Shown here: piece by piece, positions 6,674-63,827 of the stretch
How the letters are laid out: each line of letters starts with the position of its first letter
How positions within the stretch are numbered: position 1 is the first letter of the stretch
Assembly (NCBI RefSeq): GCF_000315625.1
Contig: NW_005434622.1
Coordinates: forward strand, 138,883 to 202,882
Direction: 5' to 3'
Length of the DNA: 64,000 nt
Origin: Guillardia theta CCMP2712
Lineage: Eukaryota > Protista > Cryptophyta
The notes under the pieces: generated by a model
Told to the model about the DNA's origin: nothing
The model's input: only the letters and a program-made list of their open reading frames with translations
Database searches by the model: none
Translations under genes and position numbers: made by a program

Positions 6674-7258
6674 GCTCTCGAACGCTTGCAACCTCAGGTT
6701 GTAGGTAGCTCTTGATCAGACCTGTATCCTCTTGCGAACCCCCTCTCCTCGTTGTAAGCTCACTTGTCTTGTCACTCGACGAGATCCTTTTTCTCCCTGC
6801 TATGAACTCCTTCCCTTCCCTCTCTGTCCTGCCTCCCCCGCTTCAGTTCCGCATCTTTTCGCTTCGTCCCGTCCAATGCTCGCCATTCCCCTCAAGCCCC
6901 TCAGTTTTTTGCCCCTCATAGAGATATCCTGGCGATTTAGTTCAAAAATCGCAGTAGGTTGGTAGTAGGTAATTTACCCTAAACCTAAGTTTCTTTTTTG
7001 GCTCAGGGCCAGCCTCAGGGCCAGCTCTGGGGCCAGCCCGGGTGGCACGGGGATTGAGGGGGATGTGGGTGAAGTAGGTCCGCAGTTCAAATGGATAAAG
7101 GGACCCCTCTTTTTACAGGCTTTAGTACCGGTGGAAGACATGGGGACACAAGTTGTGATCAGGAGGTTTGTCTTGCCGCTTTGCTGCCATGAGCTGCGGG
7201 AGTAGGAGGGTGAGGGAGGGGTAGAGGAGGAGGGCGCTAACCACTGTGACATCCTCCC

Positions 7259-10200
7259 ATGGCACGCGCAATGATGATTCCCATCTTTGTGCTGCTCCAT
7301 CTCTTGTTTCTCAACTTGGATGGATGTTTTGGAGCGCTTGCTGACTTGCATTTGATTCCCTTACAACACAATCAAGAAACCATCTTTTCTAGATTCCTTG
7401 AATATGATGTTACAAGAGTCACATCCAAGGGCATTGTAACATCCGCAGAGAAACATCACTTCATGATACGAGATGTGAAGCGGATCAACATTCAGAGTGC
7501 TGCAAACTTAATACTGTCACGAACTGCTATACAGTCAAACTCAGGTTTGTCATTTGCATATGCATGAGCTGTTGGAGATTGACTCTTGTTTGCTTCAGGT
7601 TCAAACCTTGGATTGAATGTGTCCATGTCGGGTGACATCATTTCATTGTCGTTTGGCGGTCAAGCAATATACAGCTTCTATGGCAATTATGGCAGTCAGT
7701 TCTATGTACCACAAAACAGTCTCTATTACTACTCCTTTGCTGCCCTGGATCCCCCGACCACTGTGGTCTCATCAGAAATGGTTTGCTTCTCACTTAAAAG
7801 TCAAATCAAGTGTTACGTCCTCGGTCAGTACGTGTGGAACGATGTTGCGTTGTACAGCCCCTGCTCCAAGGTTCAGTGCACAGCAGGGAATCCCATGTCC
7901 CTGTGGAGGTCAGCGATAGCATACAGCGGTACCACGCCGACGGGACGGCGCTATGTCCAGGTATCAGCAGCTAAGAGCTCCCAAGGATCGTACTCCATGT
8001 CTTGTCTCGGAGGTTGTGGATATTCCACAGACGTCATGACAAGCTCGGACCCTACCTTCGGGACGTCTGTCGCCCTCTCTGAGAACTTTCTTGCTATCGG
8101 TTGCCCCGGGAACAACTACGTGCGAGTGCTGAAAGCGAGTGGAGCTGATTTGTCCGCAGATCCTTACAGCCCGTTCACTGGTTGGACTTTGTTTAACACC
8201 TTTTACGGAAATCCGGATCAAAACTTTGGTCAACAGATGTCAATAAGCAGCAACTTTCTCATCGTTGGAGCTCCTGCAACGTCCTGTACCAGTGGGATGG
8301 TTGCAGTGTATAGAGTGGATGGATCGACAAACGTCTCGAAATTCTGTGAGATTACAGACTCGAACATCGGCAGTCTGTTTGGGTTCTCAATCGCGCAAAT
8401 CTCGTACGGAAACCTTACTTTTGCTGTTATCGGTGCTCCTGGAGAGAACATGGCTTATGTCCTTGCACTAAGACATTCTCCGTACCTGTGCGAGGTTCGA
8501 AACTCCTTGGCCCCGGTCAGCGGCACTGTGTTTCCAGGAGATCAATTCGGCTACTCAGTTGCCATCAACAGGCAGTCCATCTTTGTTGGAGTTCCTTACT
8601 ACAGCACCCCAGATATCTCAGGGTTGCTGTATGTTTTCACCTACTGCTCGCCAGGTTATGTGGCTGCTTCCTCCTCTTCTTGCACTCCCTGCTCTACAGG
8701 TCAAACGTCCGACGGCGGGGTGTCGCGTTGTGTCCCGTGTAACGTCTCAATACCTCAACATGCTTCTTGTTCCCCAGGCTGCAGCCCCTCGTGTGAATGT
8801 AATGCTGGGTACTTTGGAGATCGGTGCTTGCCATGCTCGCAGTACGCTCTCAGTGCAGGGCATACAAAGCCTCTCAATTCCTCTTGGATTGACCAGCAGG
8901 CAACCTGCACTTGGAAATGCGACATGGGGTTTCAGAAGACGAACGATACTTGCCTTGCTTGTCCGAACACTGATCAGTTTGACCGACTGCTACACGTGGA
9001 GTGGATACCCGGAACCTGCTCATGGCGGTGCAAGGCCACCTACTTCAGAGTCAATCAAAGTGGGATTGAAACGAACTGTACCTTGTGCTCGCAGTACAAG
9101 GCTGCTCTAGGTCAGCAACCCCCTGCCAATGCGGAATGGCTGGATCGCTTCAACGAATGCAAGTATGTTCCGCTCCCTGGATACTCATGTCAGTCAGATC
9201 AAAATTGTTTGGCATGTAATGTTTCAAAACCAAACAATTCTCACTGGCTCACTGTGAATGATCGCTACTCCTCTCCGAGCCAGTCAGTCACCATAACTTC
9301 TCTTTGTGAATTCGCTTGCGACCAAACCTTCTTTATCGCTCCGACTTCGCCGCCCACCTGCGTACCATGTGACGTCTACATGAGCAATTTCAGCGATGCG
9401 ACTTTGCCCGCCCATGGCCTCTGGCAGGCTTCTACTGCCGTCTGCACCAGTGACTCGTGGATGTGCACGGCAGGTTACAGCCGCAGCAACACAAGCCGCT
9501 ACTGCTGTCCGAACGCCGTCAACCATTCCGTAGTGAACCAGAGCTATGCTCCCTGCGGCGTCTCTTGCGAGTATGGGTATCGATGGAGCAACGAGCTGGC
9601 TTCATGTCTCCAGTGCAATACCAACATGACGGAGGGAACATTCAGATGGTTGTTGGATTGCGACTTCGAATGCTTCTGCAATGATACTGTTTGCTATCAT
9701 GGCAAAGAGACTCTCGGTGCATGTTACACCTGCCAGGAGTATTCACAAAAGGTCGGATGGGTTCCTCCACTGTACGGGGAGTATCCAGTGTATTCCAAGA
9801 CTTGTCGCGTTGATGATTGGCAGTGCAAGAATGACACTTTCAGCAAGTCGCTGGTGGCTACGCCTCCTGGATGCTGCCTGAAGTCGACTCCCAACGCCGT
9901 AGCGAATCTTTCCAGCCCAGCCACGTGCAACTTGGATTGTGAGCCCGGGTACAGGTGGGATCCTACCAGGAAGCAATGCTTCTACTGTGGGATTCCCTTC
10001 CCACGATCTGCGCACATGCTCTGGTCGTCGTTGACCTGCAAATGGATATGTGAGCCTGCGTTTATGCAAGTCTTTAACTCTTCCTCTATCCAATCTGAAG
10101 AATTTCAATGTCTCAATTGTCCGACCTATGCAGCTTTCAATTCCTGGCAGCTACCTAGCCTCGCGTATTGGGTCAACTCAACCACACTGGAGCAGCAAGG

Positions 10201-13062
10201 TGCCATCTGCTCGACAAATGCTTGGCAGTGTGCTGATGGCTACCTCAAGAATGCCCCGGCGAAACTTTGCTGTCAGAATCTGAGTTTCCCATTCAATGCT
10301 GGTAAATTTAGCACAACGAGTTGTGACTGGATTTGCAATGTGGGGTTGTTCCCGAAAAATCGTATAGGAGAGACAAGTACTTGCTCACTGTGTTCATGCA
10401 CATGTGAACAATACCTTGCATCTTTCGGGATTGAATCTCCATGCCAAACTTGCTCTGCTGCTTTCAGCAAAGCGTCAGGTTGGTGTAGCAGCGTTGGATT
10501 TAGCTCTGCCCCGTCGGCCTGTACCGTTTCAATCAAGGGTTTTTTCATGATCAAGGGAATAAGCTTACAGAGCTTCTTCGCTGCGTCTGTCGTGAAAAGT
10601 ACCCTTGCTGCATTAGGAGGTATTCTTCTGTTCCTTACACATCAGACACTGACCTCTCCTCAAAGCTATCATCAACCCAAAAATTGTTCCCGTTGTAGCA
10701 AGCGCAACACAAGCAGCTCAAACCAGGCGTTCAACTGCCGATTCCGTCTCCTTAAGCGTGATCTATCAAAACGTCGATCCTACGATAAGCAGCTTCCTCT
10801 TAAGTCAGATCGACAATTACGCAAGCAGAGCCATTGAGAGCGCGTTATCTTCAAACGGATATAGCGTGCAGGTTGCGAACTTGTTATGTCTCGAGCATTC
10901 AAATCATGATCAGTTTCTGCACGGGCAGGTAACTCTCGCTCAGCAACCCACGCGGTTCATTTCCGGTGCTTCTGTCTCGTGCAGGTTGAGGTTCTCTTGG
11001 AAGTGAATCATCTGAACACGATTTGAACAGTGTTGGATATACTTACAACCCCGAGACCGGAATCTGCTGCCCCTCATCAAAATTTCGAAGTCCACCAAAT
11101 GTAAGGATATCAAGTGCATGACCTTCTGCGCTTTGACGCTGATAGCAGGGGAGTTACGTCTGGTCAACCGATGGATGTACTTGGAGCTGTCAGCCATACT
11201 ACTTTGTAATCATTTCTGTGCTTCTTACGCCGAAAATGATTGTTTGCGATTTGACAGGGAGATAAATGTGTGACGTCAGTGCCAAACACTTGTTGACAAC
11301 CGACAATTATCACAATCCTTTGCAGATGTGAACAATCACGGGCGGGATCGTACAAGCCGCAGTACGCATATTGGGACAATAATAGTCCAACGTAATTCAT
11401 TGTTCTTGATGCAATATCTTGTGCAAAAAGATTGCTCTGAACAGTGTCATCAGATGTGACCAATGGAAATGCATTCAAGGCTACGTTGTCTCGCAAACTG
11501 GGACAACATGTCTCTCACTCGCAGATATGACTGCAAAGTGTTCCGGATACTTCAACTGCGCGGGATGCACAAATGATGCTCATTGCGTGTGGTGTTCGGA
11601 CAAGTGTGTGCCGGGTCAGGTGCTTACAAGCTCGGCTGTACCTCGTACCACCCCTGACTTGTCGAGACAGGGCAACCTTGCAGGCAAGGGCTGCACGTAC
11701 AATGACACGACGATCTCGACGAACTGCACCTGTGAGAAAGTCACCTGCACATACGAGGTAAGTCTTCAAAGAGCTGACTGACTCACCCCCATCTCACTTC
11801 TTCCCGTCCCAGTGCAAGCACACCTCGTGCGGCTCCTGCGTCAATGACAACTTCTGCGGCTGGTGCTCGTCCAGTAGCCAGTGAGACTCTCAGTGAGACC
11901 ACGTCTGCCGCCAGCTGAGTCGCCCAGGTGCATGCCAGGAGACTACTTCTCTCCCAACGCTGGCCTTGGAGCTTGTCCGGTCGGGTGGAGTGTGGGGGCA
12001 TTTGCCAACTGCCCTCAGAACAACAACATCTGGTTGGTCGGCATCATCTGCGCCGCCGTAAGATCTTGACTCGGGTGTTGAAGTCGAATCTCACGAGCTC
12101 TTGCAGATCAGCACCTTCCTCATCGTGATCTTGTGCATTCACTTCATCCTCCGCATCCGAGCCGCTTCCAACCGGCGGCCCCGCTTGATGTTCTTCCAGT
12201 ACGGCGATCAGTCTGGTGGCCTCGTGGTACTCCACGAAGTTGACGATCGAGTCTCTTCACGTTGAGTGTGTTGATCGCAGGCGCGGGAGCAAGTTCAACG
12301 CTTCCTTGACACCTTCCCTACGTTCAAGTTCGATGTGAGGAGCTGCTGACTCGCTGATCATGGTGACATGCTCATGACTTGCTCCTCGCAGGAGAACAAG
12401 CTTCCCCCGTCTTTCTCAGCTTCACGATCATCCGAGGCAGAAGGTCAGACAGAAGGTCAGACAGACGGCCAGGACGAGGAGGACAACCGACCGACATGCT
12501 CGATATGCCTTGGCAACTTCTTCACCGGAGAAGACTGTCGCATGCTGCCTTGCCTACACGTCTTTCACAAGAACTGCATCGACCAGTGGCTCTCGATGAG
12601 GTGAGCGAAGGAACTGAATTGCTCGATTGACTGTTCGGCTCTCAGTCAAGAATGCCCCTTGTGCAAACGCTCCGTCATCAGCATGGCCAGCGAGGGGGTA
12701 GGAGCTGTTGTTTCCAATCTATGAGTCACATCTCTTTGTTGGTAGGAAAACTCGACAGCAAGCGCTTACCTGGTGCTTTTGCAGCAACACCAACAAAACC
12801 AACGTCAGCAGGATCAGAATGCAAGTCTAGGACAACCTCATGAGAGCCAGGAGCCGGCGGGGCATCAGAACGAGCCGGGGGGTCATCAGCACGAACAGCA
12901 GGCTCGCGCTCCGACAGCAACAGCGGCTGTACCATTTGACGACAGTAGAGTCGAGGGGATCGTCGATCAGTGCAGGTGAGAAAGAGTGACTTGCTTCCAT
13001 CTTGTGACCTGCATGTCAGAGATGAGGGTGATAGCGAAGGGTCTGTGGACGCTGTTGTATGA
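7259..13062 (+). CDS. Receptor-like transmembrane RING-H2 E3 ligase, paralog A (signal peptide, FG-GAP repeats, Cys-rich repeats, PSI domains, TM, RING-H2)
   Basis: Signal peptide [25 protein letters not shown]; intron 7545-7598; ~3 kb exon with FG-GAP motifs ([34 protein letters not shown]) and CxWxCxxG[YF] repeats; PSI-like [20 protein letters not shown]; [24 protein letters not shown]; RING-H2 [28 protein letters not shown]; stop TGA 13060-13062. Confidence 0.8.
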
Positions 13063-13268
13063 TGTATGTGAACCCTTTTGAGGAGAGGCCGATCTGCCAT
13101 TTTAAGTTAGAAGCGTGAGAGAATCGTCTGTAAAACTAGTTTAACAGTACAATATTGTTGCCCGATGCAGCAGGCTGCACGCTTGGATTCGACTAGAAGT
13201 CGTCACCCTCTCAGTGCGCGGAAGATCGGCAGGCTGCCGGGCAGTGTCACGAGTCACCCAACGCGCGG

Positions 13269-13390
13269 CCACGGATAGTCTCACGGATAGTCCCACGGAT
13301 AGTCCCACGGATAGTCCCACGGATAGTCCCACGGATAGTCCCACGGATAGTCCCACGGATAGTCCCACGGATAGTCCCACGGATAGTCCC
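13269..13390. repeat. 12-bp minisatellite (ccacggatagtc) x10
   Basis: 10 near-perfect tandem units just upstream of the ATG at 13414. Confidence 0.95.
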
Positions 13391-57772: not shown

Positions 57773-60700
57773 ATGCAGATGCAGCGAAGGAAGCGATCGG
57801 TTGTTCTCTCCATCCTCCTTCTACTAGCTCATCTCGAGCCGTGTTGTGCTGTCCTTGACTCTGCACATGGTACACGTACTTCTCAGCCAAACAAGCCCAC
57901 GCCAATTTTTCGGTTCACCGAGTTCGAAGGCAGGGCCGGCGCGCACGTCAAGACAGGCTATCAAGTCTCTGTGCGAGATGCGAGCAGGATTAACCTTGAT
58001 GCTCCAGTCAACGTGATTCAAACTTACACAGCTCTGCAGTCGAGTGCAGGTAGCTCACCTTCCATATTTGCTCACAGTAACTTAGTGTGTCTGCTTCAGG
58101 TTCAAACCTTGGTCTTAACTTGTCTGTTACTGGCAACATTCTCTCTCTAGCCTTTGTAGGAAATGCCATGTTCAGCAGCAACGCAGCAGCTGGCAGAATC
58201 TTCTATCAGCCGACGAACAGCATACAAACGTACAGCGTTTCGGCAGACGCCACCCCTACGACTGCTGCATCCTCGGACATGGTCTGTTACTCTCTCGCCA
58301 ACACGCTCAAGTGCTACATCCTTGGATACACCGTGACAGGGATGAGCTGGAACGATGTTGCGTTGTACAGCCCCTGCTCCAAGGTTCAGTGCACAGCAGG
58401 GAATCCCATGTCCCTGTGGAGGTCAGTGATAGCATACAGCGGTACCACGCCGACGGGACGGCGCTATGTCCAGGTATCAGCAGCTAAGAGCTCCCAAGGG
58501 TCGTACTCCATCTCTTGTCTCGGAGGTTGTGGATATTCCACAGACGTCATGACAAGCTCGGACCCTACCTTCGGGACGTCTGTCGCCCTCTCTGAGAACT
58601 TTCTTGCTATCGGTTGCCCCGGGAACAACTACGTGCGAGTGCTGAAAGCGAGTGGAACTCTTGTTCCTACAGATCCTTACAGCTCGTTCACGCTCTGGAC
58701 CTTGTTCAACACTTTTGTTGGCAGTGCAAATCAAAACTTTGGTCAACAGTTGTCAATCAGCAGCACTTTCCTCATTGTGGGAGCTCCCGGGACCTTCTTC
58801 TCAAAAGGTGCTATTACAGTGTACAGAGTGGATGGATCGACAAACGTTTCGAAATTCTGCGAGATAACAGACTCACACGTCGGCAGTCTTTTCGGGTTCT
58901 CAATCGCACAAACTTCTTCGAGCAATGGCCTGACATTTGCTGTCATCGGCGCGCCAGGGTCGAATCTCGCACATGTGGTTGCTCTCAGGCAATTTCCCTA
59001 CACGTGCGAAGTAAGGAATACTTTGTCTCCTGACAGCTCTGACTTCCTGGTGAATGATCAATTCGGCTATTCAGTTGCCATCAACAGTCAGTCGATTTAT
59101 GTTGGATCGCCATACTACGCACGGTATTTCAACCCAGGCATCTCAGGACTCCTTTACATCTTCTCGTATTGCAATCCAGGGAGCGCTATCCCTCCTTTCT
59201 ATCGCGATTGCTCTGCCTGCCCTGTCGGCCAGACATCCAACGGCGGAGCCTCGTCCTGCATCACATGTACACTTCCCCTCCCTCAGCATGCGACCTACGG
59301 TGCTGGCTGCACCACCATCTGCGATCCTGGATACTTTGGATCCAGTTGCTTGCCTTGTTCGCAGTACGCTCCTGCCCAAGGCATGACCAACCCCCTGAAG
59401 TCCTCGTGGGTTGACAATCAGCCTACGTGCACTTGGCAATGCAACGCAGGTTATCAGCGAGTCAATGACGACGGTTGCGCGCAGTGCCAGAACGATATTC
59501 AATTCAACCAGTTGTCAAACGTGGAGTGGATACCCGGAACCTGCTCATGGCGGTGCAAGGCCACCTACTTCAGTGTCAATCAGACTCAAAACTTCCTTGA
59601 CTGCAAATTGTGTTCGCAGTACAAGGCTGCTCTAGGTCAGCCACCCCCTGCCAATGCGGAATGGCTGGACCGCTTCAACGAATGCAAGTATGTTCCGCTC
59701 CCTGGATACTCATGTCAGTCAGGAACATGCACAGCATGTTCGAATTCGAAGCCGCAGCATTCTCACTGGCTCACTGTGAATGATCGCTACTCCTCGCCGA
59801 GCCAGTCAGTCACGATCACTTCTCTTTGTGAATACGCTTGCGACCAAACCTTCTTTATCGCTCCGACTTCGCCGCCCACCTGCGTACCATGTGACGTCTA
59901 CATGAGCAATTTCAGCGATGCGACTTTGCCCGCCCATGGCCTCTGGCAGGCTTCTACTGCCGTGTGCACCAGTGACTCGTGGATGTGCACGGCAGGTTAC
60001 AGCCGCAGCAACACAAGCCGCTACTGCTGTCCGAACGCCGTCAACCATTCCGTAGTGAACCAGAGCTATTCTCCCTGCGGCGTCTCTTGCGAGTATGGGT
60101 ATCGATGGAGCAACGAGCTGGCTTCATGTCTCCAGTGCAATACCAACATGACGGAGGGAACATTCAGATGGTTGTTGGATTGCGACTTCGAATGCTTCTG
60201 CAATGATACTGTTTGCTATCATGGCAAAGAGACTCTCGGTGCATGTTACACCTGCCAGGAGTATTCACAAAAGGTCGGATTGGTTCCTCCACTGTACGGG
60301 GAGTATCCGGTGTATTCCAATACTTGTCGCGTTGATGATTGGCAGTGCAAGAATGACACTTTCAGCAAGTCGCTGGTGGCTACGCCTCCTGGATGCTGCC
60401 TGAAGTCGACTCCCAACGCCGTAGCGAATCTTTCCAGCCCAGCCACGTGTAACTTGGATTGTGAGCCCGGGTACAGGTGGGATCCTACCAGGAAGCAATG
60501 CTTCTACTGTGGGATTCCCTTCCCAAGATCTGCACACATGCTCTGGTCGTCGTTGACCTGCTCCTGGCTGTGTGAGCTCGGATATATGAAAGTTGACGGA
60601 TCTGCAGGTCGATTTCAATGTGTCAATTGTCCGACCCATGCAGTTTCCAATTCCTGGCAGCTACCTAGCCTCGCGTATTGGGTCAACTCAACCACTCTGG

Positions 60701-63700
60701 AGCAGCAAGGTGCCATCTGCTCGACCAATGCCTGGCAGTGTGCCGATGGCTACCTCAAGAATGCCCCGGCGAAACTTTGCTGTCAGAACTTGAGTCTGCC
60801 CTACTCCACGGGCGTTGGAGGCCTCAGTACAACGAGTTGTGACTGGACCTGCAACGCCGGGTTGTTTCCTCCGCGTCTTGCCGACATCAACCCTGCGTGC
60901 AACCTGTGCGGCTGCACTTGCGAGCAGTATCTTCAGTCATATGGCTTCACCTCCCCCTGTCCCATCCAGTACAGCTTCATCGGAGGCTGGTGCGATGGGA
61001 TGCAAATCACCCCCAGCCCCGCCGCCTGCTCCGTGTCAGTCCAGGCCTCTTTCGTGCTCACTGGAATCAGCCTCGAGACTTTCTACCTTCCCTCGACTGT
61101 TTCGGCGGTTCTCAACGCCCTGGGAGGTGACTGACCGCGTTTGACACGTCTACATGTGCTGATGTCACTCGCCAGGCTTGTCGGGGATCTCCTCCGTGCC
61201 CAGCCTCACCTACTCCTCCTCCATCAGCACCCGACGGGCAGCGGCTGACACTGTGTACATCGGGGTCACCTACCTCAATGTGAATCCAGCTGTTGGCCAG
61301 CAGTACACCCTGAGGGTAAACACTGACGGAAGTCGAGCTGTCCGCAGCGCCCTCTTCTCCAAGGGTTATGATGTGCAGGTACGGGATGAGACGAGGGGAG
61401 GAAGGGGAGCGCGGAGGAGGAAGGAAAGAGTGAGGGAGAGGAGGGAGAGGAGGAGAGGAGGGAGAGGTGGAGAGAGGAGGAGAGGAGGGAGAGGTGGAGA
61501 GAGGAGGACGCTGACAGAGGAAACAGGTTGTGATGAAGGGAGATTCGTCGGTGTTTGTCTCAGGCGCCTCAATCTCCTGCAGGTTGGATCGACGTTGGTG
61601 TTTTTCTCATGTCTCATCGAATGATACAGAGCTGGGTACATCTACAATCAAGCGACAGGGAAATGCTGCAGATTTACGTTATTTCTAGACCCTTCAAATG
61701 TCTGCATCAAAGATCAAAGCAAACTAGGTTGACACGTGCTCTTGGTCAGATTGCATCGGAAAGATATATCTGGTCAGCCAACGGCTGCGATTGGAGTTGT
61801 GCTCCGAAATACTATGTATGGAGGGGATGAGGTGTGCTCGTGAACTGACGTGATGGTATTAGGGACAGAACTGCCTGACGTAACAAGTCGAACATAACAT
61901 CGCTGTGTTTGTTGAACGAATGTGCAGATGTCAGGAGTACAAGAGTACAACGTACAAGCCAAGCTTCTCGGTGTGGGACAACAACAGCCCAACGTAAATC
62001 CCCCACATCTCTCCTCGTTCAACGTTGTTCCTCCCTCACTTGACCTGCCAGGTGTCAATGGAAATGTATGGACGGCTACGTGCTGTCCCCCAGCGGCACA
62101 TCGTGTCTCTCTCTTGCCAACGTGACAAGGACGTGCGCGTCGCTCACCCGCTGCGCGAGCTGCACGACCAATGCAGCGTGCGTTTGGTGCTCAAACCAGT
62201 GCGTGCCGGGGGAGGTGAAGGAAGGAGCGAAACCTCGTGGTCGATGCTTGACTAGCCGACGAGCAGGCGAACTCTGCAGGGAATGGCTGCCCCTACGACG
62301 GAGTGACGCTCTCTTCGAACTGTACATGCGACAAGAAGACTTGTCCATATGAGGTCATGGCCCTGCTGCTCCTGTTGCTGCTCCTGCTGCTGCTCCTGTT
62401 GCTTCTCCTGCTGCTGCTGCTACTGCTGCTGCTGCTGCTGCTCATCTTCCTGCTCCTCCTCTTTCTCATACTCGCCACCTCTTCCTCCTCATGCTCCTGC
62501 CATGCGCAGCAAATGTCATCAATTTCTCTCTTCTCGTTACCCTGACTCTCTCGGCAGTGCCAGTACTCTTCTTGCAGCTCTTGCGTTCAAGACAACTTCT
62601 GCGGCTGGTGCTCGTCTGCCAGCAAGTGAGTTTCACTGTGGCTCCTGCTCCTCGCCCTCATCCTTGTTCTCTATGGGACCAGGTGCATGCCAGGTGACTA
62701 CTTCGCTCCGAGCGCCGGCATGGGAGCTTGTCCACTCGGGTGGAACGTCGGCCCATATGCTACATGCCAGCAGAGCAACAACATATGGCTGGTCGGCATA
62801 ATCTGCGCATCTGTAAGGAATTCTTCTTTCTCTCCCCCCCCTCCCCGCTCCTCCGCCCCCTCGTTCTTCTCCACCACCACCTCCTCTCCTCCTCCTCTCC
62901 TCCACCACCTCCTCTCTTTCTCCTCCATTTCCTGCGGTGACTGGCTCGACAGACGAGCACAGCGCTCATCGTGATCTTGTGCATTCACTTCATCCTCCGC
63001 ATCCGAGCCGCCGCCAACCGGCGGCCCCGCACTATGATCTTCCAGTACGGCGATCAGTCGGGAGGTGTGACGGTGAGTTTTCCCTATCAAAGAGGAAAGG
63101 AAGAAGCAGCTGACCCTGTTCATCGCAGGCGCGGGAGCAAGTTCAACGCTTCCTTGACACCTTCCCTACGTTCAAGTTCGATGTGAGGAGCTGCTGACTC
63201 GCTGATCATGGTGACATGCTCATGACTTGCTCCTCGCAGGAGAACAAGCTTCCCCCGTCTTTCTCAGCTTCACGATCATCCGAGGCAGAAGGTCAGACAG
63301 AAGGTCAGACAGACGGCCAGGACGAGGAGGACAACCGACCGACATGCTCGATATGCCTTGGCAACTTCTTCACCGGAGAAGACTGTCGCATGCTGCCTTG
63401 CCTACACGTCTTTCACAAGAACTGCATCGACCAGTGGCTCTCGATGAGGTGAGCGAAGGAACTGAATTGCTCGATTGATTGTTCGGCTCACAGTCAAGAA
63501 TGCCCCTTGTGCAAACGCTCCGTCATCAGCACAGACGAAGACAACACAACCGTACCACATGCTGTTGCCTGCTCGCTGCTGCTGACGTCTCTTCAGGCCG
63601 CTCGAGCCAACGCCTTTCTTGTTCTCCAGCAGATGCACTCAAGAGGACCTGAGGGAGAACAGCAGCGACCGACGTCGTCGTCCTCGGCCGCCATGCGAGC

Positions 63701-63827
63701 GGAGGAAGGGAACGTGCAGGGAGTGGTGGAGTGCAGGTGAGCTGGATGGTGCAAGAAGGAGAGGGGATGAAGAAACTGCAGGTATCAAGACGACAGCGAC
63801 GACGAATCAATCGATGTCGAAGTTTGA
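57773..63827 (+). CDS. Receptor-like transmembrane RING-H2 E3 ligase, paralog B
   Basis: Signal peptide [18 protein letters not shown]; 1015-codon ORF colinear with paralog A; PSI-like [20 protein letters not shown]; TM; RING exon identical in translation to A; stop TGA 63825-63827. Confidence 0.8.

Follow-up and report, generated by a model that had tools for sequence, protein, structure and literature searches.

A Guillardia theta gene for a single-chain membrane protein that joins an FG-GAP propeller ectodomain to a RING-H2 domain

Here, we analysed a 64,000-nucleotide stretch of DNA from the cryptophyte Guillardia theta CCMP2712 (contig NW_005434622.1, positions 138,883 to 202,882 of the forward strand; this whole stretch is called the window below, and all coordinates are given in its numbering). 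The subject of this work is one gene of the window, gene A, located at 7259-13062 on the + strand, as are all of its parts described below. Its product is a 1,645-residue type I single-pass membrane protein made from one spliced mRNA, in which a signal peptide, an FG-GAP propeller, a cysteine-rich stalk, a ferredoxin-like domain, an eighth cysteine-rich unit, two PSI-like modules, a transmembrane helix, a pre-RING motif and a RING-H2 domain follow each other in one chain. It seems reasonably likely that this protein is a receptor-like ubiquitin ligase (E3), whose RING would tag membrane proteins and whose propeller would bind a partner.

Gene A is expressed as one spliced transcript

Two Guillardia theta proteins match the largest open reading frame (ORF) of the region (7586-10837), P0001 with 100% and P0002 with 74% identity, and these matches identify the window as nuclear DNA of this species. 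P0001 (UniRef A0A7S4U9B9; sources JGI, UniRef and MMETSP) is 1,563 residues long and comes from a 5,126-nt contig. It maps exactly to the + strand from 7259, in 16 blocks with short GT..AG introns between them. Public runs were compared over 7200-13100, and two of them, from separate studies, contain single contigs of 5,098 nt (X1) and 5,086 nt (X4). Both contigs start at or before 7200 and 7214, respectively, extend past 13017, and have every intron removed; 16 splice joints were listed for them and one further joint was reported. A third study (run X7) gave identical joints in shorter pieces, and the last joint was also crossed by 11 reads of run X21, a 3'-biased set of raw RNA reads from 2026.

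The gene model, built from the mapping of P0001 and from the spliced contigs, consists of 18 exons with a complete coding sequence of 4,938 nt. Exons 1-6 are located at 7259-7544, 7599-10619, 10666-10871, 10929-10984, 11031-11100 and 11149-11205, exons 7-12 at 11258-11274, 11326-11391, 11454-11619, 11671-11757, 11813-11880 and 11928-12057, and exons 13-18 at 12107-12226, 12281-12334, 12392-12600, 12646-12697, 12746-12975 and 13020-13062. When they are joined, a single open frame runs from the start ATG at 7259 to the stop codon at 13060-13062. All 17 introns begin with GT and end with AG, and they are 44-57 nt long. The smallest exon is a micro-exon of 17 nt (11258-11274) inside the eighth cysteine-rich unit; three runs confirm it by the sequence that they carry across the 11206/11326 joint.

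The gene A product is identical through residue 1555 to P0001, an independent MMETSP transcript protein. Introns 12698-12745 and 12976-13019 are spliced out in the contigs and are not spliced out in P0001. The stop at 12722, used in P0001, was ruled out as the true end, since removal of both introns in the contigs carries the frame to 13062. P0001 reads through intron 12698-12745, so that this public model is about 80 residues too short at the C-terminus.

As every exon is covered by spliced contigs of ~5.1 kb in two independent studies, gene A is one gene and not two. The initial annotation, which was made from the sequence alone, had postulated one transcript from 7259 to 13062; the X1 and X4 contigs, which span all exons and do not end before the PSI and transmembrane exons, bear this out, with start and end exact. 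One might suspect an annotation artefact in which a secreted FG-GAP/cysteine-rich gene was merged with a neighbouring gene for a small transmembrane RING ligase, as the C-terminal third is split into 16 small exons that are easily mis-joined and the public models conflict with each other, P0001 being truncated and P0002 mis-spliced. However, the ORF is continuous, the same fusion is present in full-length homologues, including the intron-poor ones, and in each of two studies all 17 introns are bridged by one spliced contig. The last point rules out two merged genes, and we find the artefact hardly credible.

In the 5' leader there is a short upstream ORF at 7189-7224 (an ATG, 10 codons and a stop), provided that transcription begins before 7189. 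The X4 contig begins at 7214, downstream of the start of this small ORF, and the X1 contig extends past 7200.

The cytosolic part carries a complete RING-H2 domain

The strongest hydrophobic segment of the protein begins at about residues 1401-1403 and has a Kyte-Doolittle mean of 2.96 over 19 residues. By hydropathy and by its modelled helix it was assigned as the transmembrane helix (residues 1401-1425, with the basic residues that come next; 12028..12151), in agreement with the single hydrophobic helix followed by basic residues noticed initially. The next element is a pre-RING motif of the form GL...V..F....P.F.F (residues 1449-1468; 12221..12334), which was identified from the family alignment, where it is conserved, and from PDB sequence matches to ZNRF3 (9ozx_A, 8xfp_C) that begin ~20 residues N-terminal of the RING.

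The RING-H2 domain occupies residues 1504-1546 (12497..12670, with the intron 12601-12645 within) and was assigned by Pfam, PDB matches and the family alignment. It scores 48.9 bits with zf-RING_2 (cut-off 27.3), a pattern search for C3H2C3 places its start at residue 1504, and all eight zinc ligands are present in canonical spacing, as expected of the canonical RING-H2 that had been claimed. In RING domains, the ubiquitin-conjugating enzyme (E2) is contacted by an Ile after Cys1, a Trp before Cys6 and a Pro after Cys7, and Cys8 is followed by a basic linchpin; these positions are conserved in active RING E3 ligases. The Ile of CSIC, the Trp of DQWL, the Pro of CPLC and the Lys/Arg that follows (CPLCKR) are shared by 13 members of the family. 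In the PDB, the sequence of the cytosolic part matched RNF165/Arkadia best (E 2e-18), and also RLIM, ZNRF3, RNF13, AtRMR (AT5G66160) and EL5; the matches of the RING to solved, active RING-H2 ligases span E values from 2e-18 to 1e-10. An ESM Atlas feature search with residues 1190-1563 returned only low-scoring RING clusters (0.75-0.78) and gave no lead.

Outside the pre-RING motif and the RING, the cytosolic tail of 216 residues is acidic and rich in Gln and His. It comprises an acidic low-complexity insert between the two elements and a Gln/His-rich acidic C-terminal tail (residues 1547-1645; 12671..13062, with the stop codon included), the latter read from the contigs and the joined ORF.

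The ectodomain consists of a propeller, a cysteine-rich stalk and small membrane-proximal domains

The N-terminal ~1,370 residues are of the secretory-pathway type: besides a signal peptide, they have over 100 cysteines and 25 sequons for N-glycosylation (the P0001 model contains 115 Cys and 25 sequons). By direct inspection of the sequence, residues 1-26 (7259..7336) start with basic residues, continue with a hydrophobic core and end with small residues, like the signal peptide that the initial annotation had proposed. A hydrophobic segment likewise opens the homologues whose N-termini are complete (P0050, P0213). A phmmer search of residues 1-1420 against PDB sequences gave nothing significant.

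Residues ~86-445 (7514..8647, with the intron 7545-7598 within) form a seven-bladed FG-GAP beta-propeller of the integrin alpha type, as indicated by Pfam, AlphaFold2 and Foldseek. The FG-GAP_2 family scores 42.8-52.1 bits here (cut-off 23), and four canonical FG motifs lie at residues 249, 305, 356 and 412, in line with the four FG-GAP-like motifs noticed before. The AlphaFold2 model of residues 28-480, calculated from a 44-row alignment, has a mean predicted local distance difference test score (pLDDT) of 79.9 and a predicted template modelling score of 0.83, and its 28 strands make up seven four-stranded blades. All of the 50 matches listed by Foldseek against the PDB were integrin alpha heads (best E 3.7e-10, template modelling score ~0.5, identity 12-16%). 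The sequence matches other than the G. theta proteins nearly all bear FG-GAP_2 and are metagenomic, and the few named ones are bacterial or archaeal.

The propeller is followed by a cysteine-rich stalk (residues 445-1070; 8645..10522), in which an iterated hidden Markov model (HMM) search against the family located seven units of ~95 residues with double CxxC/CxWxC motifs. An eighth unit (residues 1189-1282; 10980..11520), found by exon mapping, HMM and alignment, is spread over six small exons that include the 17-nt micro-exon; homologues have similar numbers of units. In an alignment of 34 units, 7 Cys are invariant, and a Pro and a Trp are nearly invariant. The unit has no significant Pfam match, and its profile has no PDB sequence match below E 0.24. 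The best Pfam match, TNFR_ELAPOR1_6th, reaches 19-21.5 bits with a cut-off of 33.2. Of the 34 single units scanned with Pfam, 3 matched it (E 0.047 or worse), and one unit each matched Ephrin_rec_like, TNFR_c6 and RANK_CRD_2. Naming the stalk after the TNFR-type or Ephrin_rec_like families was thus rejected, these being scattered sub-threshold matches. Of the long run of TNFR-like cysteine repeats in the initial annotation, the repeats themselves stand, as eight units of ~95 residues, and the name TNFR-like is no more than a hint. With neither a Pfam nor a PDB sequence match, the ~95-residue unit appears to be a new repeat specific to this family.

Between the seventh and the eighth unit lies a Cys-free ferredoxin-like domain of the SEA/MAD-like class (residues ~1070-1183; 10520..10964), defined by an AlphaFold2 model and VIA-align. 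In the model of residues 1040-1430, from a 28-row alignment (pLDDT 84.1), this domain precedes the eighth cysteine-rich unit, after which come a pair of small modules rich in disulphides and, at residues 1399-1429, a long helix. Residues 1070-1183 are modelled as beta-alpha-beta-beta-alpha-beta, which is a ferredoxin-like fold. The best VIA-align matches were dystroglycan (Z 8.7), protocadherin-15 MAD12 (Z 8.3), CELSR1 (Z 7.6) and GPR126 (Z 7.0), all described as domains of single-pass surface receptors; the SEA/MAD domains of these proteins share with ours a similar fold and a membrane-proximal position, but Z values of 7.0-8.7 are borderline and at the level that the tool gives for common folds. 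Foldseek with the model of the C-terminal ectodomain returned generic ferredoxin-like enzyme subdomains only, and this domain also dominated a wide VIA search. The SEA family is absent from the Pfam matches of the gene A protein, and the SEA autoproteolysis motif G/SVVV was not seen on reading the sequence, without a pattern search for it. Thus, of the Cys-free SEA-like stretch proposed initially, the Cys-free part is clear, while the likeness to SEA is weakly supported by a borderline fold match.

The two PSI-like modules (residues 1288-1343 and 1345-1395; 11536..12012) were recognized with Pfam PSI and a family profile; the second of them borders on the membrane. Pfam PSI (PF01437) scores 20.4-21.1 bits in the gene A protein, just below the cut-off of 23.1, and 26.1 bits, i.e., above the cut-off, in the homologue P0070, with 22.2 bits in P0060. 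With a profile of the family, the PDB matches were confined to PSI domains of plexins and semaphorins and were weak (E 0.018-0.9); the likeness to these domains lies in the cysteine pattern. The PSI-like modules noticed initially are thus present, with weak scores for PSI. As a whole, each of the features listed in the initial annotation was found at its position.

Colinear relatives are found in cryptophytes and in Ancoracysta twista

An exhaustive HMMER search with residues 1190-1563 gave 20 cluster representatives with E values of 1e-30 or lower; beyond these, the matches were to the RING only. Most of the 20 have in common a module of cysteine-rich unit, PSI, transmembrane helix and RING. 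Full-length colinear relatives with ~30% identity are P0221 (1,633 residues), P0050 (1,885), P0052/P0229 (1,870/1,928) and P0054 (1,874), and in each of them the RING-H2 follows the strongest hydrophobic segment. The single-chain architecture proposed initially is thus supported both by one transcript and by the same architecture in homologues of ~30% identity, and the colinearity of the full-length homologues may be a sign of selection on the whole chain. All family members are annotated as 'hypothetical' or merely as 'RING-type domain-containing'.

The named family members come from cryptophytes, such as Baffinella frigidus CCMP2293 (KAJ1471470.1, in the same cluster as P0221), and from Ancoracysta twista, a distant predatory protist that is not known to have a plastid; colinear homologues of ~30% identity also occur in marine metagenomes. 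A second, word-index protein search for relatives gave no further named taxa. The Ancoracysta twista protein P0107 is colinear but shorter (989 residues): its FG-GAP repeats are followed by two cysteine-rich units, a single PSI-like module (Pfam E 0.013), the transmembrane helix and the RING-H2. The metagenomic P0003 seemed to lack a RING. However, its contig continues with the transmembrane helix, the pre-RING motif and the beginning of the RING, the latter two in other frames and up to the contig end, therefore the P0003 model is cut by introns.

This distribution bears on the idea that the protein is a ligase of complex-plastid import (SELMA-type), routed to the periplastid membranes by its signal peptide. 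A signal peptide is the first step on the way to the cryptophyte plastid, and SELMA needs a membrane RING ligase. Nevertheless, no SELMA component is known to resemble a heavily disulphide-bonded, glycosylated ectodomain of this size (1,370 residues), and a colinear relative exists in Ancoracysta twista. We consider a role in plastid import very improbable.

Two partial proteins, P0199 and P0200 (MGB1596042.1 and MGB1595705.1), belong to a metagenome-assembled genome of a 'Promethearchaeia archaeon' and fall in the same 90% cluster as the eukaryotic P0050. They are probably from eukaryotic contigs that were binned into the archaeal genome.

The layout resembles RNF43/ZNRF3 and the ectodomain does not

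In animals, the transmembrane RING-H2 ligases RNF43 and ZNRF3 remove Frizzled under the control of R-spondin. In the concept of receptor-like E3 ligases, RNF43/ZNRF3, with a RING in cis behind a small ectodomain, are set against MEGF8 and attractin, whose giant ectodomain is coupled in trans to MGRN1, a separate RING protein recruited by the MASRPF motif of the tail (10.1101/2020.05.25.113944). The layout of the gene A protein is most like that of RNF43/ZNRF3: both are of type I, in both the ectodomain is joined in cis through a single transmembrane helix and a pre-RING segment to a RING-H2, and the similarity to ZNRF3 spans the pre-RING segment and the RING (9ozx_A, E 3.4e-14; 8xfp_C, E 6.8e-13). 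The ectodomain of RNF43/ZNRF3, however, is a single PA-type domain of ~150 residues, whereas that of the gene A protein has ~1,370 residues and consists of a propeller, a cysteine-rich stalk, a ferredoxin-like domain and PSI modules. Since RNF43/ZNRF3 already combine a RING-H2 with a transmembrane helix and an ectodomain in one direct fusion, it is the ectodomain that is new, not the principle.

The cassette of transmembrane helix, GLD-like 'P.F.F' motif and RING-H2 is also common to the PA-TM-RING ligases (RNF13, RNF167/Godzilla, GRAIL, RMR) and to the plant ATL ligases (EL5), and the cytosolic part of the gene A protein matches RNF13 (4.6e-12), AtRMR (8.5e-13) and EL5 (6.5e-11) in the PDB. 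In contrast, PA-TM-RING ligases have a PA domain and ATLs almost no ectodomain, while the gene A protein has an acidic insert before its RING. Pfam scans with E values up to 1, run on the full-length protein and on its parts, detected no PA domain. Membership of the PA-TM-RING group was rejected for this missing ectodomain, although the single transmembrane helix, the pre-RING segment and the RING-H2 are all present.

The likeness to the attractin/MEGF8-MGRN1 system lies in a giant single-pass ectodomain with a beta-propeller and PSI; in that system it is coupled to RING-dependent ubiquitination of membrane receptors (10.1101/2020.05.25.113944), as is predicted for the gene A protein. The propeller of attractin/MEGF8 is of the kelch type and the RING is separate, whereas the gene A protein has an FG-GAP propeller and a RING in the same chain. 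Pfam found none of the attractin/MEGF8 families (kelch, CUB, EGF/laminin-EGF, C-type lectin) in the gene A protein, and MASRPF was not seen on reading its cytosolic tail; with these defining elements missing, membership of this group was rejected as well.

Integrin alpha chains are type I membrane proteins whose tip, like that of the gene A protein, is a seven-bladed FG-GAP propeller. Integrins, however, have Ca2+-binding DxDxDG loops in the last blades, Ig-like thigh and calf domains as legs, and GFFKR after the transmembrane helix, whereas the gene A protein has repeats of the FG-GAP_2 type and a leg of cysteine-rich repeats. Pfam found no thigh or calf domains, GFFKR was not seen after the transmembrane helix, and we know of no beta subunit for this protein. 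It was not counted among the integrin alpha chains, in spite of its seven-bladed propeller, as the DxDxDG loops, the thigh and calf domains and GFFKR are all missing.

We did not find a description of such an architecture in full-text literature searches (FG-GAP with RING-H2, Guillardia E3s and integrins, PA-TM-RING, PSI with RING-H2, and protist receptor-like E3s), and what is written on Guillardia FG-GAP proteins is a passing mention in which the RING does not appear. Therefore, the contrast that the initial annotation had drawn between this protein and both kinds of known ligases holds, as no PA domain (Pfam), no attractin/MEGF8 domains, no MASRPF and no published description were found.

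Possible function of the gene A protein

Ligase activity, location at the cell surface and sensing of a ligand are all predicted here from sequence and modelled structure. As a receptor-like E3 ligase, the protein would recruit a ubiquitin-loaded E2 with its RING on the cytosolic face of the membrane, and would ubiquitinate itself and neighbouring membrane proteins. The propeller would bind an extracellular or luminal partner, and clustering or relocation driven by this partner could select the membrane proteins to be marked for endocytic uptake and degradation. Such a role would be analogous to that of RNF43/ZNRF3 acting on Frizzled.

Four points weigh against this proposal. The signal peptide and the topology were assigned by inspection and a hydropathy scan. 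The RNA nature of runs X1 and X4 is on record as a guess only, and was deduced here from the lack of all 17 introns in their contigs. A pattern search found none of the Ca2+-binding DxDxDG loops of integrins in the propeller, so that ligand binding of the integrin kind cannot be assumed. Finally, many PA-TM-RING relatives, such as RNF13 and the plant RMR proteins, act in endosomes or in the vacuolar pathway and not at the cell surface.

As the main rival we see a sorting or quality-control ligase of the endomembranes. Its lumen-facing domain (in the endoplasmic reticulum, Golgi, endosome or vacuole) would bind cargo, e.g., glycoproteins or components of the periplast or ejectosomes, and its RING would control the traffic of receptor and cargo, as proposed for RMR and RNF13/RNF167. 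It is this group that the cytosolic cassette resembles most, with RNF13, AtRMR (AT5G66160) and ZNRF3 among the PDB matches, and the sequence is equally compatible with the plasma membrane and with endosomal membranes, between which it does not distinguish. On the other hand, the PA domain, which is the cargo-binding module of RMR and RNF13, is absent by Pfam. Moreover, a propeller, a stalk, a membrane-adjacent ferredoxin-like domain and PSI typify surface receptors of adhesion and guidance in animals, and the best fold matches are integrins, dystroglycan, protocadherin-15, CELSR1 and plexins. It seems to us that sorting within the endomembranes is a serious but rather unlikely function.

It could also be argued that the protein is mainly a molecule of adhesion or recognition (between cells, in mating, between cell and bacterium, or at the periplast), and that its RING sets only its own turnover, with no signalling output. 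An integrin-like head on a long rigid stalk fits this, and autoubiquitination is common among RING E3 ligases (10.1101/2020.05.25.113944). However, at ~30% identity the RING and the pre-RING motif are the best-conserved parts of the tail, which fits, without proving, a wider role of the RING, and we find a purely adhesive function quite unlikely.

If the protein does work as a receptor-like ligase, binding of an external partner (a cell, the surface of prey or of a bacterium, matrix or periplast) would be followed directly by ubiquitin-dependent removal of membrane proteins. Receptor-like E3s are known mainly from animals (RNF43/ZNRF3, MEGF8-MGRN1) and plants (ATL, RMR, GDU1-LOG2), and they have small ectodomains or a separate RING subunit. 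The gene A family puts a very large ectodomain of the adhesion-receptor type and a RING-H2 into one chain. We suggest, tentatively, that cryptophytes and at least Ancoracysta may possess lineage-specific surface receptors with an integrin-like head and a ubiquitin ligase in one polypeptide, evolved independently of RNF43/ZNRF3 and MEGF8-MGRN1. The occurrence of the family in deep-branching protists suggests that coupling of extracellular recognition to ubiquitination arose repeatedly by domain shuffling, and the family would offer a simple system for studying how engagement of an ectodomain controls a cis-linked RING. The significance is limited in that domain fusions are common in protists and G. 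theta is hard to manipulate genetically.

A paralogue with patchwork identity is located downstream

A paralogue with the same architecture, gene B (GUITHDRAFT_141168, P0002), was identified on the + strand at 57887..63737 by tblastn, Pfam and DNA comparison, ~50 kb downstream of gene A. P0002 is 1,546 residues long and maps to this locus at 99-100% identity in longer blocks. Comparison of the two genes at the DNA level gave a patchwork: identity is 97-100% at 7835-8134 and 9317-10016 (with exact runs of up to 210 nt) and 92% in the tract 12119-12683, and such high-identity tracts alternate with tracts of 57-76%. This pattern looks like repeated gene conversion between copies lying 50 kb apart.

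The public model GUITHDRAFT_141168 is apparently mis-spliced at 61400-62400, where ~90 residues of P0002 align to nothing in the family. In the same interval, other frames contain matching exons for the eighth cysteine-rich unit and the first PSI module of P0001.

About 200 nt 3' of the gene A stop codon, at 13269-13390, there is a tandem repeat of the 12-nt unit CCACGGATAGTC, present in 10.2 copies with 98% matches.

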